From assembly GCF_000400465.1 (NCBI RefSeq), contig NW_008806282.1, positions 180,001 to 212,000 on the forward strand: a stretch of DNA of 32,000 bases. The letters run 5' to 3'. Origin of the DNA: Wallemia ichthyophaga EXF-994. Taxonomy: Eukaryota; Fungi; Basidiomycota. Below are positions 20,689 through 27,655 of this stretch, in pieces (the stretch's first letter is position 1; every line of letters begins with the position of its first letter). The notes beneath the pieces are model-generated. The model was given only the letters and a program-made list of their open reading frames with translations, had not been told where the DNA came from and did no database searches. A program made the translations under genes and the position numbers.

Positions 20689-21894
20689 TTAATTTGATGC
20701 TTTATGCTGCGTACTGGTCAACCTCTCCCGTTCGTCATCATCATCTGCCTCGCCTATATCGAATATAGCGTCATTCGAGCCACTCTCTACGGCTTGATCG
20801 CGCATGTTTAGCTCGTCATACTCCATCACTCTGCCTGTCGATGGATCGATTGGCTGGTTGGAGCTTGTGACTTGTTTGTATTTGATGTAGTTGTAGACAC
20901 TTGATTATACTTGTTAGCATGTGTAATAAAAGCAAAACACAAGAACCCACCAAATACCCAAAATAGTGATACACATTCCTGTCACGTTTATTGGGGTTAG
21001 AGTGTCACCAAAAATAGCCGAGCTAATGAATATTGTGAGAAGCTCCTTAAATATTCCTGCGATAGACATGGTGATGATAGATGAGCGCTCTATCAGCTTG
21101 AACTCGGATAGCACCATACCGAAAGCGAGAAAACCAGGTGAGATGATCATCAAGCAGGATTTTAGTGAGTGGAGTGCACCAAATTGGAAGTAATCACTGT
21201 GGAAGATATCCCACCAACTCTCAAATATGACGCTGAGTAGAATTAGACATGCGAACATGACAGGCGCGAGGAAATAAAGAATGATGAGAGGATTCTTCAG
21301 TCCATACTTCTGTTTCTGAAGAAGGATTTGAGTGAGAGACCAACGCAAACCACCCGCGGCTGTAGCGGACATGACTTGAATAGCGCCAGAAAGGACGAAA
21401 GAAGTTTCAGCGCTGACCATCAACACCACACCGATAGCTATAATGACGATAATCACAGCCATTGATAGCGATGGTCTCTCCAATTTGAACAGGAAAGCGA
21501 AGAAAAGGACCCAGATGAGTGAAGAGGACTTGCACATCGTGTAGAAAGTGAGAGTGATCGACTTAAGTGATAAGTTGCTTAAGCCAATGTCTAAAGCTGT
21601 AGCTAGAGCGCAAGGTATAATTCTCTTGCTATAATCTAATAGTGTCATAGGTTCGTTCGTTTTAAGTGCGGGGAATATCTTCAGACCGATAAAGGAGAGG
21701 ATCCACTGCATGAGCATGTGCCAGCTGGTCATGAATAGCGGGAAAGGGAAGCTGGACTGGCTGACGGAGAAGATCCACTTGTTGTAGACAGACAGGCTGA
21801 ATGCGAACGTGTACCAAAGTGAGATGTAAATGAGATTAATGAGCGCATGCCTGAAGTACCAGCTTCTTTTATCGTCTTGATTTTCCAAAGGCAT
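20689..21894 (-). CDS. Triose-phosphate transporter / SLC35C2-like nucleotide-sugar transporter, 2 exons
   Basis: LSVYNKWIF, FPFPLFMTSWH, DIGLSNLSLKSITLTFYTMCKSSSL, GLRWSLTQILL, AGIFKELLTI; the last exon GICVYNYIKY ends with TAA at 20689. Confidence 0.9.
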
Positions 21895-21919
21895 CGTTGT
21901 CAGCAATCAACGAGCACTT

Positions 21920-23368
21920 ATGACAGAACACCCGATCAAGCATGGAGACTTAGAGCTGGAGAACGCCGACGAGTATCCGTGGGTTTCTCGTAGAGTGCAA
22001 TATACCCACTCACATACTCTCAGCACCATTTTCACCACGGAAACAAGGCTCAGGAGAGGATTGTGTCCGGTGACGCAAAATAAACTGAATCCCGCTGAAT
22101 CCCACCAGCTCTACTACGAAGTACACGGCTCAGCTGATCCACAAGCTGAGAAGTTGGTATTCATTATGGGTTTGAATGGTAGTTGCTTCGGCTGGTCCAA
22201 ACAGATCAACAACCTCGCACTCACAGGGAAATATCAGCTGCTAGCCTTCGATAATAGAGCAGTTGGTCACTCAACTGGTCCCAGAGGTCCTTACAGGTTG
22301 GCGTTGCTCCTCCTCAGCCACGTGCACTCCTCTCACACAATTCCAGCACTAGCGGTATGGCAGAGGATGTCATAGTCCTTCTTGACCTACTGGGATGGAC
22401 AAACAGCCGCTCTCTTCACTTAGTTGGAGTTAGTATGGGTGGTATGTAAGTCGTGTCTTCAATTCCAATCCGAAGCTCAATTTCTCTTAGGATTTCACTT
22501 GAGCTGTGCCATAGAATCCACGAACGTATCGCGTCTCTCACTCTCGCAGTCACTAGCAGAGGCTATGGCCCTTTCTGGAATCTACCATCGGTACGTCATC
22601 GATAAGCATGTCTGCTGTCGTTGTAACATCACCGCAGTGGAGAGGTATCTACACCCTCATGTCCTTCTTCACTATCAGTGATAGCGAAAAACTCATTCAG
22701 TCGTACCTAGAACTAGTGTAGGTATTGTACTTCACTCTTTGCAACCGGCTTAGACTTGCTACCCAGATTCCCTATCCATTGGCTCGCTGAGATACGCGAG
22801 AATGACAGCCTTAAACGCACAAATAGAGAATGTGAAAGAGATGTGCGAGGGACCTTGAAAAAAGGTGTCAACCTACTCACACGCCCAACAGCACATGATC
22901 GAAAGAGCCAAATACTCTAGAGAACAAGATCCCTTCGGTGCCATCTCTCAAATGTATGCTGCCTTAGGACACAGCGTGTCTCCAGCCAGAATGAAGTTGA
23001 TTGATCACAATATACCAAAGGTGAGTAGTGAGTTTCGGGGGGAAGGTAGTTGACCTGTGCTATAGATAACTATCGTATCTGGAGATGAAGATTATCTAGT
23101 TGGTGAGTTTAGATGTATTTTTCTGTCTAACTCCCGCCTAATCACTCTCCCTAGACATATCATGTTCAGTTGATCTCAAGAAACACTTGCCAAGGTGGGA
23201 ATGGTTGGACATTAGCTAAGTAGCAGCTAACCCGCAAACAGTGCAACATACACTGTATTTGAAAATACAGGCCACGGTCTCATCGGTCAGCGTCCCTTCA
23301 GATTCAACAAGCTCATCGAGGACACTGTCGCAGAAGGGTCTGAAATAGTTGGCAGGAAAGCCAGGTAG
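21920..23368 (+). CDS. Alpha/beta-hydrolase fold protein, multi-exon
   Basis: LYYEVHG, KLVFIMGL, LAFDNRAVGHS, nucleophile elbow VGVSMGGM (GxSxG), catalytic His in FENTGHGL; TAG at 23366-23368. Confidence 0.85.
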
Positions 23369-23632: not shown

Positions 23633-25530
23633 TTATGCGGTATTCTTGATAATTGCGTCTAATTCCTGCACTACTTCTGTAGCACTTGGGCGGTGTTTAC
23701 CATCTTGCACCCACATACGTTCGATGAGGTCAAGAACATCACCACCCCACTGCCTCTTGAACTGATTCAGAGACGGTCTGAGTGTGTTGCATTAGATATA
23801 TCACAAAACAAAAGCTCAACGCACCTTTTATGCTTTTGTCCTACCTGATCATAGATGAAATGCTCATTTTGACCTTCCCAGGGATAGCATTTTTTAGTAC
23901 TATGCCACTGCAATATCTCCCAATACACGAGAGCAGTAGCAAAAATATCAACTGAGGCAGTATACGAAGGCTTAGCCGACCACAACTCAGGAGCCTGCCA
24001 GTTGACAGTGCCGACTAGAGACTGGATCATAGATCTGGTACTCTGCTTCACTCTTGCCAGACCGAAATCATTTAACTTAGCTCTACCATTATCGTCTATC
24101 AACACATTACTCGACTTCATATCACGATGTATGACTTGCGGCTTGCATGTGATATGTAGATACTCCAGCCCTCTGGCAATGTCAAGCATAATAAGTAAGG
24201 CTTTCTTGTTCGTTGGGGGTGGATTGTTGCGGAGGTAGTCGAACAAATCGCCATTCTTGCATAATTCACTGATCAGCATCACTGGTGCACCATTTCCAGG
24301 CACTGAGACGCCTATAAACTTGACAATATTGGGATGATTTAATTTTGACAGTACTTGAAGTTCTCTGATATCCATCTCGGTTAATTCTCCACGTATATCT
24401 GCCACTGCGCACTTTTTCTTGCGGATTGATCCTACGTAAACATCTTTGAAACCACCAGAACCTATTCTTTCTTTCTTTTCCACTATCGTAGCCTTGATTT
24501 CCTTATTGACTAATCCAAGTTCCTGTAAATCCAACGCCAGTCCTTCGCTAGTATTGCTCGAACGATGACCTGGTTTGGGAGTAGCTTTAGAGACATCGGT
24601 GGTGTCACTCTGGCGAGCTGTAACAGTGCTTGAAAGGTCTGACAGCACAGCGCGTGTAGGTTTCGTACCTCGACCTTGGCGAGAGCGTTTTTTCTGTGGT
24701 TTGGGTGTGTGCAGGTCGCTATCGATGCTGGCGTTCTCCTCGAAATCCGACACAGCAGTGGTAGAGCTGATTTCTGAAGCGGATGATACGGGAACACTAT
24801 GCATATCCTCCTTATGCAACAGAAGTAATTCAATCAGATCATCTTTAGTGTGGTGTTTTGAATGCTCTATCCCTGAGACATTGCACATTTGTTCCAGTTG
24901 TCGCTTCAGATACCGTTTCAGAGATGATACGGTCTCATCGCGCATATCCACGTCTATATCCGTATCGCTAACGTCATCGGATTGGCGGACGCCGCGCATA
25001 TCTCTATTCTCAGCATCGCTAGAGTGATTGCTAGAGCTTGCGGTAGCGGCAGAATCTTTCTCGCTATCTGCTATGCTCATTAGGGACACGCTCTTTGCAA
25101 AGTCCTCGTCGGGTGTATGTGATGAGTCAATTGAGATTGTACGCGTGCGCAACTGATATCTATTCTGAGGCTGGGAGGAGTTGTTGAGAGACTCCACGCT
25201 TATTTTGTTCATGGCCTTGCGCTTGGCTGCGCGTGTGCGCTTTGCAGTTGCACCTGAGCTTTGGGAGTTAACGTTGCTAACGCTGAGGGGCTTGGTTGAG
25301 TATCCATCTTCGTATTCGTCTTCGGAAGAGAGACTGACGGGATGAACACAGCGCCTGTCTCTGAGCCCGTCTTTCTCGAGGAGTATCTCGATTAGCATTT
25401 CCTTGGTACACGCGCGCAGATCACCGCAGTCTGAGCCCTCAGTCGCACTCGCCGTGAGCATTTCCAGCAGATCAGCCTTCCTGCACCGCCTCAGCTGATC
25501 CTCATGTGATTTCGTTGACATCGTTGACAT
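23633..25530 (-). CDS. TKL-type Ser/Thr protein kinase with long N-terminal region and WNK-like lysine placement, 2 exons
   Basis: IGSGGFKDVY, LNHPNIVKFIG, IHRDMKSSNVL, DFGLAR, GTVNWQAPE; the last exon MWVQDGKHRPSA ends with TAA at 23633. Confidence 0.9.
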
Positions 25531-25616
25531 CGTTGTCGCTGTGTAACCTCTTATAGACACCCCACCAAGTGCCCAAAAAGTTGTGGCGCGTTTCCAACCT
25601 CTCTAGAATACAGCCG

Positions 25617-26345
25617 ATGCAGACGCGTGATAATCTCATCAGCTTCTCTCCCGTCGACTTCACGCCGCCGCCGCTGCCTATCCGTAGCGGCGGAAGTGGG
25701 AATGTAGGGGGCGTAGGAAGCGCAGCGGATACAGCGGGTACAACAGACACCGCTAGCAACAGAAGAAACAGCATCACGCCTCCTCCACCTCCCCTCCCAC
25801 TCAGGAAAGGGAGCGGTAGCAGCACGTCGAGCATCCATGCCACCGCTAGTGCACTCAGCAGACCTCAGCCAGCTACACCTGCGCCAGCGAGTAAAGTAAA
25901 ATCAAGCATACCCATTATGCCCCCGCCTGCGCGTATCAATAGCCCCGGAAGCAGTCTGCGCGGAGGACCTAGTAATACGTCACTAAATAGAATAACCGAA
26001 CGGAGTCGATCGGGCAGTGTAAATAGCACATCTAGCACACCACAATCAATACGCAATTCTCCTGCTCCTAGCTCGATATTCAAATTGACGCAGCCGACTC
26101 CTATCGACAAAATCCGCTATCAGAGTCTGTATAACAGACTTATGGAAAGGCAAAGTAAGGCAAGCGATAGGGGTGCGTTGGATGTCAGAATAGTGAGAAG
26201 AGTTTGGAAAGCTTCAAAATTAGATAATGTATACTTGGACACTCTCTACAACAACTGCAACACACCAAACAAAGAAATGGATGCAAATACATTCACCAAA
26301 TCATTAGCCACTATAGATTCGGAGCTGAGACGACGCAAGTCATAG
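25617..26345 (+). CDS. Pro/Ser-rich protein with C-terminal EH-like domain (Irs4/Tax4-like)
   Basis: PPPLPIR and PPPPPLPLRK motifs; C-terminal RYQSLY...LDVRIVRRVWKASKLDNVYLDTLY...FTKSLATIDSELRRRK resembles an EH domain. First ATG at 25617. Confidence 0.6.
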   Translation: MQTRDNLISFSPVDFTPPPLPIRSGGSGNVGGVGSAADTAGTTDTASNRRNSITPPPPPLPLRKGSGSSTSSIHATASALSRPQPATPAPASKVKSSIPIMPPPARINSPGSSLRGGPSNTSLNRITERSRSGSVNSTSSTPQSIRNSPAPSSIFKLTQPTPIDKIRYQSLYNRLMERQSKASDRGALDVRIVRRVWKASKLDNVYLDTLYNNCNTPNKEMDANTFTKSLATIDSELRRRKS

Positions 26346-26351
26346 CTAAAA

Positions 26352-27629
26352 CTAATCAATTAACGACCCAACGTCTTCATACCACGCCTTTCGAACATTC
26401 TCATTCAAGTACCGTAAATCACTATTTAATCTATTCAGCATTGCATCCGAATATCCTTCTTTAGTGAGTAAAAGCGCCTCTGTGACGTATATAGCGACTG
26501 TGATTTGAGCTAGTGGCTTCTCTGGGCGTAAACTCTTGCGCGTGTCATCTAATGATAGCTCGTCATGGAAGTATGCCTTGATAGCTTTAAGATGTCTTGG
26601 TTGTAGCGATGTAATGCGAGTACCTTCCCGTTCTATTGATCTGTTAGCCGTGTTATACTTTACTTTGTTCGAAATTGAGTTCCTGATGTGGGTATCTGAA
26701 GTGGTAGGTATAGGCTTGGTATTGTTTGCAGCGTTGTTTGGTGTCTCTTTAATTAAACCAGTTTCGTAGTCCTTTTCTACTAAGAAATTGCTATAATCGG
26801 TATCTTTGGATTGTTCTGATAATCGTTTATACATCTGATAGCCAGCGTAAACATCATTAGCCGCATATTCTATCTGCTTCCAGTCAAGAAAAGACTCCCA
26901 ATCACCAACTCTCTCATTTCCTTTATCCAGTCGCTGTTTCAACACATACTCTGTCAATTTGTCCAGTGATATCAACACTTTATTCGTGCCCAGATCTTCG
27001 GCGTGGATAGATTTAGCGAGGAAAGTCAACTCCAGCAACCCTTTACACTGTACCTTGTAGTCATTGAAGAATTTGCGACCATCGTTGCCAATATTGACAC
27101 CAAATTTAATAATGTCTTTGTTTGTGAGAAGTTTGATTAGCTCTTGAGGTAATTTTGGCATGTGGTAGAGGTGTAGGATAACAATAAGCTTATCATCACA
27201 TAGCTGTGCTTTGTCAGCTTTGCGTGGCTCAATGGCCACACTCACCTGTACAAGTGCTGTGGGACGTTGACGTGCGTTCTTACGGAAATCGACTTTCCAC
27301 TCCATATCAAAACCTACAGGACCTCTAAGGAGGGAAATTAGATCATCAGCTTCTTCCAAAGAGCGCGTGTAGGCAATCCCTGGTGCTTTGAGACCTTTGT
27401 TTGAGAAACTCGGTGGACGTGTGTAAGAGTAGAGAGGGAGGGGAGTGACTGAGGGTTTAATTGGTGGTTTACTGGCCTTTCTAGGAGTACTCTGTAGCGT
27501 CTTGTTGCGGTAATCAGCGGGTGGGTTTGGGTTTGGAGGTGTAGTAGCCACACCAGTAAAACCACCAGTCAAATCTATAATTTTATCATTTGATAGTCTT
27601 CTTATTAAATTCATATTCCTAGTGAGCAT
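26352..27629 (-). CDS. DEDDy 3'-5' exonuclease (WRN-exo/EXD2-like)
   Basis: ExoI GFDMEW, TALVQ, ExoII KFGVNIGNDG, SLDKL, DW, ExoIII YAANDVY; probable 42-nt intron at 27204-27245. Confidence 0.88.
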   Translation of the reverse strand: MLTRNMNLIRRLSNDKIIDLTGGFTGVATTPPNPNPPADYRNKTLQSTPRKASKPPIKPSVTPLPLYSYTRPPSFSNKGLKAPGIAYTRSLEEADDLISLLRGPVGFDMEWKVDFRKNARQRPTALVQVSVAIEPRKADKAQLCDDKLIVILHLYHMPKLPQELIKLLTNKDIIKFGVNIGNDGRKFFNDYKVQCKGLLELTFLAKSIHAEDLGTNKVLISLDKLTEYVLKQRLDKGNERVGDWESFLDWKQIEYAANDVYAGYQMYKRLSEQSKDTDYSNFLVEKDYETGLIKETPNNAANNTKPIPTTSDTHIRNSISNKVKYNTANRSIEREGTRITSLQPRHLKAIKAYFHDELSLDDTRKSLRPEKPLAQITVAIYVTEALLLTKEGYSDAMLNRLNSDLRYLNENVRKAWYEDVGSLID

Positions 27630-27655
27630 CACAATGCGGTAGATAACCAACGACG

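Follow-up and report, generated by a model that had tools for sequence, protein, structure and literature searches.

A fungal family of TKL-like SAP kinases with a probable relocation of the ATP-anchoring lysine to the glycine-rich loop

Where does a protein kinase that has no lysine in its VAxK motif anchor ATP, and is such a protein an enzyme at all? The question is raised by a kinase gene of the basidiomycete Wallemia ichthyophaga EXF-994, lying on the minus strand at 23633..25530 of the window, by which we mean the whole stretch of 32,000 nucleotides that was analysed (assembly GCF_000400465.1, contig NW_008806282.1, positions 180,001 to 212,000 of the forward strand). The gene is complete and encodes a product of 616 amino acids, in which the glycine-rich loop has lysine at the position of its third glycine and the β3 strand has alanine at the position of the VAxK lysine. 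We think it rather likely that the protein is an active, independently arisen TKL-like SAP kinase belonging to an ancient fungal family, and that it uses Lys362 of strand β2 in place of the missing lysine. All coordinates given below for this gene refer to the minus strand.

The glycine-rich loop reads IGSGGFKDVY (24436..24465), and Lys362 (codon AAA, 24445-24447), the proposed ATP-anchoring lysine, takes the third-Gly position of GxGxxG. The β3 strand reads CAVADIR (24391..24411), with Ala377 (codon GCA, 24400-24402) at the VAxK position. The αC glutamate is Glu390 (24361..24363), within the sequence DIRELQVL, the catalytic loop reads HRDMKSSN (24106..24129), and both the DFG motif (24061..24069) and the APE motif (23986-23994) are present. 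The activation segment LARVKQSTRSMIQSLVGTVNWQAPE (23986..24060) contains conserved serine and threonine residues and a family-specific P+1 loop, N-W-Q-A-P-E. A preliminary description of this locus, made from the letters alone, had named the loop lysine and the β3 alanine and had claimed that the αC glutamate, HRDMKSSN, DFG and APE were intact; translation of the reverse complement bore out every residue. The alignment register of the relocated lysine is unambiguous. MAFFT places Lys362 under K233 of WNK1 and Ala377 under C250, Ala377 is also aligned with the VAxK lysine of TNNI3K and CTR1, and HMMER pairs a segment of TNNI3K with IGSGGFKDVYVGSIRKKKCAVADIR of the window.

This placement of lysine is a trait of the whole family. 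Membership was defined without reference to the glycine-rich loop, by a W-Q pair in the P+1 loop together with a score of at least 150 bits. The third position of the loop is then lysine in 320/320 distinct homologues. Across 324 members the β3 position is alanine (138), glycine (91), serine (70), cysteine (22) or threonine (3), and it is never lysine (0/324). None of the canonical TKL domains of the same sample has lysine at the loop position. The αC glutamate is kept in 323/325 members, and the catalytic loop, HRD[CM]KSSN in the family, retains its HRD aspartate and its lysine in 322/326 each and its asparagine in 323/326; the D, F and G of DFG and the glutamate of APE are each present in 326/326. 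The neighbouring residues of the catalytic spine itself are also kept, with valine or cysteine two positions after the lysine and alanine two positions before the small β3 residue. It had been suggested in the preliminary description that basidiomycete TKL relatives might have the feature in common, and this was confirmed in the best 120 homologues, where the IGSGGFKDV loop is invariant and β3 reads A-[IVL]-[A/S/C]-[E/D]-[FIL]-R. The loop lysine and the absence of the β3 lysine are in fact conserved together across orthologues well beyond Basidiomycota. The sequence S-T-R-S-M..S.VGTVNWQAPE is invariant in 120 basidiomycete orthologues, and W-Q-A-P-E is retained in early-diverging fungi.

The gene model leaves little room for error. 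Exon 1 (23825-25530, with the ATG at 25530) and exon 2 (23633-23777, including the TAA stop at 23633) are separated by an intron of 47 nucleotides (23778-23824, GTGCGT...CTAAT...CAG), and the spliced translation has 100% identity over 100% coverage with EOR00936.1/XP_009268213.1 of the same strain, annotated as 'putative serine/threonine-protein kinase drkC'. An alternative intron pair, GTAGGA...AATCAG, was dropped; the chosen pair GTGCGT...CTCAG restores the TKL 'RP' motif and matches the deposited protein exactly. Since the deposited protein is identical and all 320 homologues agree, the lysine feature is not the result of chance, sequencing error or a gene-model artefact. The kinase domain (residues 351-606, 23666..24480, interrupted by the intron; Pfam Pkinase 3.1e-44, PK_Tyr_Ser-Thr 8.3e-42) lies at the extreme C-terminus, with 10 residues between its end and the stop codon, and is the only domain found by a Pfam scan of the Wallemia protein. 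An AlphaFold2 model of the kinase domain had a predicted local distance difference test score of 80.7 and a predicted template modelling score of 0.85, and the activation segment (residues 151-171 of the modelled domain) was of low confidence.

We note some further features of the two positions and their neighbours. The residue following the small β3 residue (24397..24399) is acidic in 307/324 members (E231, D76). It echoes the C-E-L of WNK1, and is hydrophobic in the aphelid-type members and in plant WNK8; it could be either a convergent compensation or a sign of shared history. The residue just after the loop lysine (24442..24444) is aspartate in 315/322 members, where WNKs have threonine. 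Rust fungi (P0120, P0188, P0386, P0394) apparently have two types of paralogue, one of them standard (IGSGGFKDVY ... STRSM) and the other with VGSGSFKDVY, cysteine at β3 and a different activation loop, RDVMSMCATTCGTLNWQAPE. In a divergent agaric paralogue from Flagelloscypha sp. (P0283, 40% identity) the loop is degraded to IGKGSSKIVH, with the lysine kept, glycine at β3 and NWMAPE rather than NWQAPE in the P+1 loop.

Members occur in all the subphyla of Basidiomycota (Agaricomycotina, Wallemiomycetes, Tremellomycetes, Pucciniomycotina and Ustilaginomycotina), including Wallemia, Cryptococcus, Kwoniella, Trametes, Coprinopsis, Suillus, Armillaria, Serendipita and Austropuccinia, and also in Mucoromycotina, Mortierellomycotina, Glomeromycotina, Zoopagomycota and the aphelids. 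Rust and smut members (Puccinia, Malassezia, Jaminaea) came to light when 1.84 billion representative proteins were searched exhaustively, as did members of 40-47% identity with glycine at β3, such as that of Calcarisporiella. Further searches seeded with the Calcarisporiella protein and with an aphelid protein reached Mucor, Rhizopus, Absidia, Mortierella and Rhizophagus/Gigaspora, together with Coemansia, Basidiobolus, Massospora, Thamnocephalis and the aphelids Amoeboaphelidium and Paraphelidium. The family is mostly single-copy. No relative with the relocated-lysine arrangement was found outside fungi and aphelids among the search matches, and no ascomycete orthologue was present in any match list. 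In Cryptococcus neoformans the orthologue is Ykl1 (CNAG_06671; CNF03480 in JEC21, the two genes being on matching chromosomes), with 57-60% identity in the kinase domain and the motifs IGSGGFKDVY and VAISEFR; it has 983 amino acids and a disordered N-terminus much longer than that of the Wallemia protein. In the BLAST matrix of the Cryptococcus kinome paper, CNAG_06671 has values of 1e-70 to 1e-131 in basidiomycetes and 1e-16 to 1e-19 in the listed ascomycetes, where the named matches are unrelated kinases (a p38-type mitogen-activated protein kinase (MAPK), the MAPK os-2 and a cyclin-dependent kinase). The family appears to have been lost in Ascomycota.

Two sets of matches from the representative-protein search should be mentioned here. 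The top match by summed score (P0148) was set aside; it is a protein of 1069 amino acids made up of 15 tandem HRD-to-DFG fragments, which has no relation to the family and probably results from faulty assembly or gene modelling. Among P0149-P0290 there are many long proteins with 2-10 tandem TKL kinase domains, several of which lack one or another of the HRD aspartate, the DFG aspartate and the β3 lysine, so that they look like tandem kinase-pseudokinase arrays.

What lies in front of the kinase domain is best seen in the early-diverging members, which are of about 350-390 amino acids and consist of an N-terminal SAP domain and the kinase. The proteins of Mucor (27.9), Basidiobolus (31.2) and Radiomyces (31.4) exceed the gathering score of Pfam SAP (PF02037); the domain is precomputed on many others, and is sub-threshold in the orthologues of Cryptococcus, Coprinopsis and Rhizophagus. 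A hidden Markov model (HMM) was made for the SAP-containing module at the N-terminus, using 80 short orthologues. It matches residues 190-271 of the Wallemia protein at 20.8 bits, where a divergent SAP-like module LKRYLKRQLEQMCNVSGIEHSKHHTKDDLIELLL (residues 190-250, 24781..24963) can be recognised. A second SAP-like helix-extended-helix motif may be present at residues 12-52 (QLRRCRKADLLEML...TKEMLIEILLE, 25375..25497). This was picked out weakly, by eye, from its resemblance to an upstream L.RLRK.EL...TK....I of the family consensus, and is at most suggestive; the SAP-module HMM gives a non-significant -1.1 bits there and Pfam nothing. Basidiomycete orthologues outside Wallemia are of about 850-1070 amino acids with long disordered N-termini. 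Those of Wallemia (P0003, P0004) are shorter, at 616-664 amino acids, and the difference falls in the disordered N-terminal region.

How could a lysine on β2 serve in place of one on β3? From general kinase structure, the third-Gly and VAxK positions are expected to be cross-strand neighbours in the β2-β3 hairpin (in WNK1 numbering 233+250 = 235+248), so the lysine amine should be able to reach the same place from either strand. We propose that this is an active serine/threonine kinase using Lys362, because the exchange at two positions is that of WNK and the motifs are intact. Throughout the family the ATP-anchoring lysine would have moved from β3 to the third-Gly position of the neighbouring β2 strand, and Lys362 would stand in for the canonical VAxK lysine, just as Lys233 stands in for it in WNK1. 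Its tasks would be to place the α and β phosphates of ATP and to pair with Glu390, with the aspartate of DFG, or with both. The small residue on β3 (Gly, Ala, Ser, Cys or Thr) would keep the nucleotide pocket open, and the intact HRDxKxxN, DFG and APE motifs would carry out ordinary phosphotransfer. A catalytically essential lysine on β2 has been described in both POMK (PMC10211241) and WNK1 (PMC4718504), and it is the small cysteine on β3 that permits ATP binding in WNK; in the pseudokinase domain of GCN2, which is inactive, a bulky tyrosine takes that place and keeps ATP out (PMC12867742). Regulation is probably exerted through phosphorylation of the conserved serine and threonine residues of the activation loop (STRSM..S in Dikarya). 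The SAP module, separated from the kinase by a disordered linker, probably recruits it to DNA or chromatin, and association of the kinase with chromatin is accordingly something that we regard as probable from the domain composition. The arrangement most likely originated within a TKL lineage of the CTR1/STY/MLK kind, at a time when Basidiomycota, Mucoromycota, Zoopagomycota and the aphelids had not yet split.

To which kinases is the domain related? The preliminary description had called the rest of the domain TKL/MLK-like, and PDB and Foldseek searches, the family HMM and the diagnostic columns all point the same way. The best sequence matches in the PDB are CTR1, TNNI3K, LysM receptor-like kinases, ZAK, Roco4, DLK, BRAF and TAK1, with no WNK in the top 60. 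When Foldseek was run with the AlphaFold2 model the top 50 matches were all TKL or TK, the best being TNNI3K, ITK, BRAF and ZAK, and again there was no WNK. Beyond the family the scores fall sharply to the canonical plant STY13/HT1 'TKL-Pl-4' kinases. The family HMM gives 161-222 bits for nine canonical TKL domains, 158 for WNK1, 155 for TAK1, 125 for SRC and 76-106 for STE, AGC and CMGC kinases. Kinomer assigned the Cryptococcus orthologue CNAG_06671 to its class TKL_sub3 (3.2e-35). Thirteen diagnostic columns side with the TKL consensus against WNK1, among them the phenylalanine of DFG, the 'WE' of subdomain IX and the 'W...RP' of subdomain XI. The corresponding TK/TKL motifs, defined as ...WE... 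in subdomain IX and [CM]W(x)6RP in subdomain XI (PMC3937382), are present in the C-lobe of the window protein as VYWEIL and RMWVQDGKHRPS. Canonical TKL kinases (CTR1, STY13/HT1, ZAK/MLTK, TNNI3K) are thus the closest to the family by sequence, profile and fold, and have HRDxKSxN, DFG, G-T-x-x-W-x-APE, 'WE' and 'W...RP' in common with it; unlike the family they have a standard GxGxxG and VAxK, and no SAP module.

Trees were calculated by vectorised neighbour-joining on p-distances with 300 bootstraps, with and without the columns of the glycine-rich loop and β3. The WNK1 sequence used is 100% identical to PDB 5w7t_A and CTR1 was taken from the PDB search alignment, while those of BRAF, TAK1, ZAK, SRC, PAK1, OSR1, PKA, CDK2 and AtWNK8 are provisional copies. 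The family is monophyletic in 294-296/300 bootstraps. It groups with TKL and TK, to the exclusion of WNK, STE, PKA and CDK2, in 182/300 (61%) with all columns and 219/300 (73%) with the loop and β3 masked; it groups with WNK in 42/300 (14%) and 17/300 (6%), respectively. The domain therefore falls outside the WNK clade in these trees, just as it does among the top PDB and Foldseek matches, and membership of the WNK family was rejected, since the affinities of sequence, fold and tree lie elsewhere, the motif is DFG rather than DLG, and there are no C-terminal regions of WNK type. Judged by its sequences, the family stands apart from WNK as a deep, TKL-like lineage of its own, and, as the preliminary description had suggested, an origin of its lysine placement independent of that in WNK is favoured with fair confidence.

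We also considered FslK, the fungi-specific lineage of kinases, which is TK/TKL-like, as the present family is; two agaric orthologues of the Wallemia kinase carry the NCBI label 'TKL/TKL-ccin', a KinBase label. FslK has been reported to be absent from Cryptococcus, Pucciniomycotina and Ustilaginomycotina, to occur only in Agaricomycetes, where it is expanded, and in chytrids, and to have all the conserved kinase subdomains (PMC3937382). Membership was rejected, as the present family occurs in Cryptococcus, rusts, smuts and Mucoromycota and has no subdomain II lysine. No WNK was found in the C. neoformans kinome tables. One paper reports three WNK-like sequences (PkpA) in Phycomyces, and these could be either bona fide WNKs or members of the SAP-kinase family.

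To our knowledge, few kinase-fold families have shifted the otherwise invariant lysine to β2: WNK and POMK, which are active, and the pseudokinase domain of GCN2, which is not. WNK (K233 and C250 in WNK1) resembles the present family in having the third-Gly lysine on β2, a small residue on β3 and an intact αC glutamate, HRD and APE. It differs in having DLG and HRDLKCDN where the family has DFG and HRDxKSSN, and in having C-terminal autoinhibitory, CCT-like and coiled-coil regions where the family has its kinase at the C-terminus and a SAP module at the N-terminus. POMK (SgK196) likewise has no VAxK lysine and an essential lysine on β2 (PMC10211241); it is, however, a sugar (O-mannose) kinase of the secretory pathway in which the canonical HRD and DFG have migrated elsewhere, whereas the family keeps all the other motifs. 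In the human GCN2 pseudokinase domain a β2 lysine (K294) again replaces that of β3 (PMC12867742), but the P-loop is degenerate, β3 has tyrosine and DFG is replaced by DYS, where the family has a clean GxGxF-K, a small β3 residue and DFG.

There are several points that weigh against an active, independently arisen SAP kinase, and they are taken here together with the alternatives that some of them favour. The strongest of these alternatives, which we nevertheless consider unlikely, is that the protein is a pseudokinase: it would no longer carry out phosphotransfer but serve as a scaffold or in allosteric control, with the β2 lysine only stabilising the fold through a salt bridge to an aspartate of DFG or of the activation loop. 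In sequence a pseudokinase is usually recognised by the absence of the VAxK lysine, and more generally by the loss of one or more among this lysine, the HRD aspartate and the DFG aspartate; formally the kinase qualifies. Moreover, the geometry of Lys362 is taken from homology alone, and the human GCN2 domain demonstrates that a β2 lysine can be purely structural, in a domain that is inactive in spite of it (PMC12867742). CNAG_06671 has no ATP-binding-site or active-site signature in InterPro. The gene, for which H99 has no second 'TKL protein kinase', was named and deleted in a kinome study of 2016. Of the 30 conditions scored for the ykl1 deletion strain, which is viable, 27 gave 0, and these take in salt (NaCl or KCl at 1-1.5 M) and sorbitol (2 M); the deviations are all weak (capsule -1, urease +1, H2O2 +1). 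As the deletion strain is nearly wild-type and almost without phenotype, the family is dispensable in vitro in C. neoformans, and nothing in these scores points to an osmotic role like that of WNK; the weakness of the phenotype also tempers any claim of practical importance.

Set against a pseudokinase is the pattern of conservation. Pseudokinase families normally drift at catalytic positions. Here both glycines of the loop, the αC glutamate, HRD, the lysine and asparagine of the catalytic loop, DFG and APE are essentially invariant in more than 320 sequences from several phyla, a mark of purifying selection on the entire catalytic machinery, and we therefore expect an active enzyme rather than a pseudokinase. 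The residue on β3 is always small, leaving room for the nucleotide, where GCN2 has tyrosine and a degenerate P-loop, and the same arrangement of lysine supports catalysis in both WNK and POMK.

The second alternative is that the family is a very divergent branch of WNK, with a single relocation of the lysine in a common ancestor and TKL-like features that are secondary or plesiomorphic. This we hold to be quite improbable, yet the resemblance is real. The same two positions are involved in a similar context (GRGSFKTVY and VAWCEL in WNK1, GSGGFKDVY and VAI[AGSC]E[FLI] in the family), and eight diagnostic columns common to the family and WNK1 are rare in TKLs. WNK1 has about 30% identity to the window domain, as have CTR1 and TAK1, and outside its own family it scores best against TKLs. 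The family and WNK were joined in 14-30% of neighbour-joining bootstraps with all columns. Preference between the two Pfam models is also intermediate. The bit scores for Pkinase/PK_Tyr_Ser-Thr are 151.8/143.7 for the window protein and 155/155, 146/153, 174/174, 175/165, 174/178 and 162/174 for other members, so that the family is about equal on the two and lies between WNK1 (193/149, +44 for Pkinase) and CTR1 (198/239, +41 for PK_Tyr_Ser-Thr); canonical TKLs favour PK_Tyr_Ser-Thr by 34-41 bits. For this reason 'TKL' is the label that fits best, though without strong backing, and since the trees are by neighbour-joining only and WNK1 is about as similar as some TKLs, the support for independence from WNK is moderate and not decisive. 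What tells against a common relocation is that the grouping with WNK drops to 6% when the loop and β3 are masked while that with TKL and TK rises to 73%. In addition the family HMM prefers nine canonical TKL domains over WNK1, the motifs are DFG not DLG and HRDxKSSN not HRDLKCDN, with the TKL 'WE' and 'W...RP', the protein ends with the kinase where WNKs have C-terminal domains, and the acidic residue after the β3 position is missing in the aphelid members and in plant WNK8.

A third alternative, an active kinase in which another basic residue anchors the phosphate and the loop lysine has a different role, is very improbable: arginine at the third position after the β3 residue (Arg380) is found in 309/324 members, and lysine or arginine precedes the loop (position 355) in 93% of 288 members pre-selected for the loop lysine, but both are less conserved than Lys362, aphelid-type members have T, S, Q or N for the arginine and keep the loop lysine, and general kinase structure leads us to expect the arginine where the strand ends, pointing away from the nucleotide.

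The preferred interpretation, an active TKL-like kinase using Lys362, also includes the SAP module, and a last point against it is that Pfam detects no SAP domain in the Wallemia protein itself. If chromatin association is accepted, a more elaborate function can be imagined by analogy with WNK1, where a halide site has been proposed to arise from the odd position of the lysine (PMC4718504). The fungi would have evolved a counterpart of the WNK active site independently, in a SAP-tethered TKL kinase on chromatin; the shift of the lysine to β2 would leave, behind the pocket for the nucleotide, a cavity that binds halide or another small anion, coupling the ionic or osmotic state of the nucleus to phosphorylation. 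We give this little credence. If it were true, an ion-linked kinase would be notable in a family retained by an extreme halophile such as W. ichthyophaga.

The surroundings of the gene were examined in the window. Its upstream neighbour (26352..27650, minus strand) is an open reading frame (ORF) of 432 amino acids with a 3'-5' exonuclease domain (PF01612 DNA_pol_A_exo1, 1.9e-16), resembling WRN or RNase D exonucleases. Between the two lies a Pro/Ser-rich ORF of 258 amino acids (25569..26345, plus strand) without a Pfam match. It is divergent to the kinase gene, its listed start being less than 100 bp from the ATG at 25530, so that there could be a bidirectional promoter between them; the ORF itself may be just one of the exons of a larger gene. 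On the other side, an ORF at 21920..22375 (plus strand) covers no more than the N-terminal part of an alpha/beta-hydrolase fold (PF00561, 20.7 bits, below threshold), presumably as exon 1 of a gene with several exons. At 20914..21906 (minus strand) there is an ORF of 330 amino acids of the triose-phosphate/nucleotide-sugar transporter family (PF03151 TPT, 3.2e-24; EamA, 2.3e-06).

Part of this is already known: kinase annotations exist for the gene and for its orthologues, one of which has been named and deleted. We found no mention of the lysine arrangement of Ykl1 in the paper text that could be searched, and no description of the family itself, of its SAP-kinase architecture or of the displaced lysine, although the pseudokinase survey of Kwon et al. 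2019 was outside the search and could list the family. What is new is probably a further occurrence of the β2 lysine of WNK and POMK type, in a different group of kinases and probably of independent origin, and strictly conserved through most of the fungal kingdom.

A further case would serve as a natural replicate in the study of how such a rearrangement of the lysine works, and why, in a kinase core that is otherwise canonical. It would also mean reclassifying proteins, in the hundreds, that pipelines relying on motifs would mark as pseudokinases. As for the fungi themselves, Cryptococcus, Mucorales, rusts and smuts, though apparently not Ascomycota, possess in this family a fungus-specific SAP kinase with an unusual ATP pocket.

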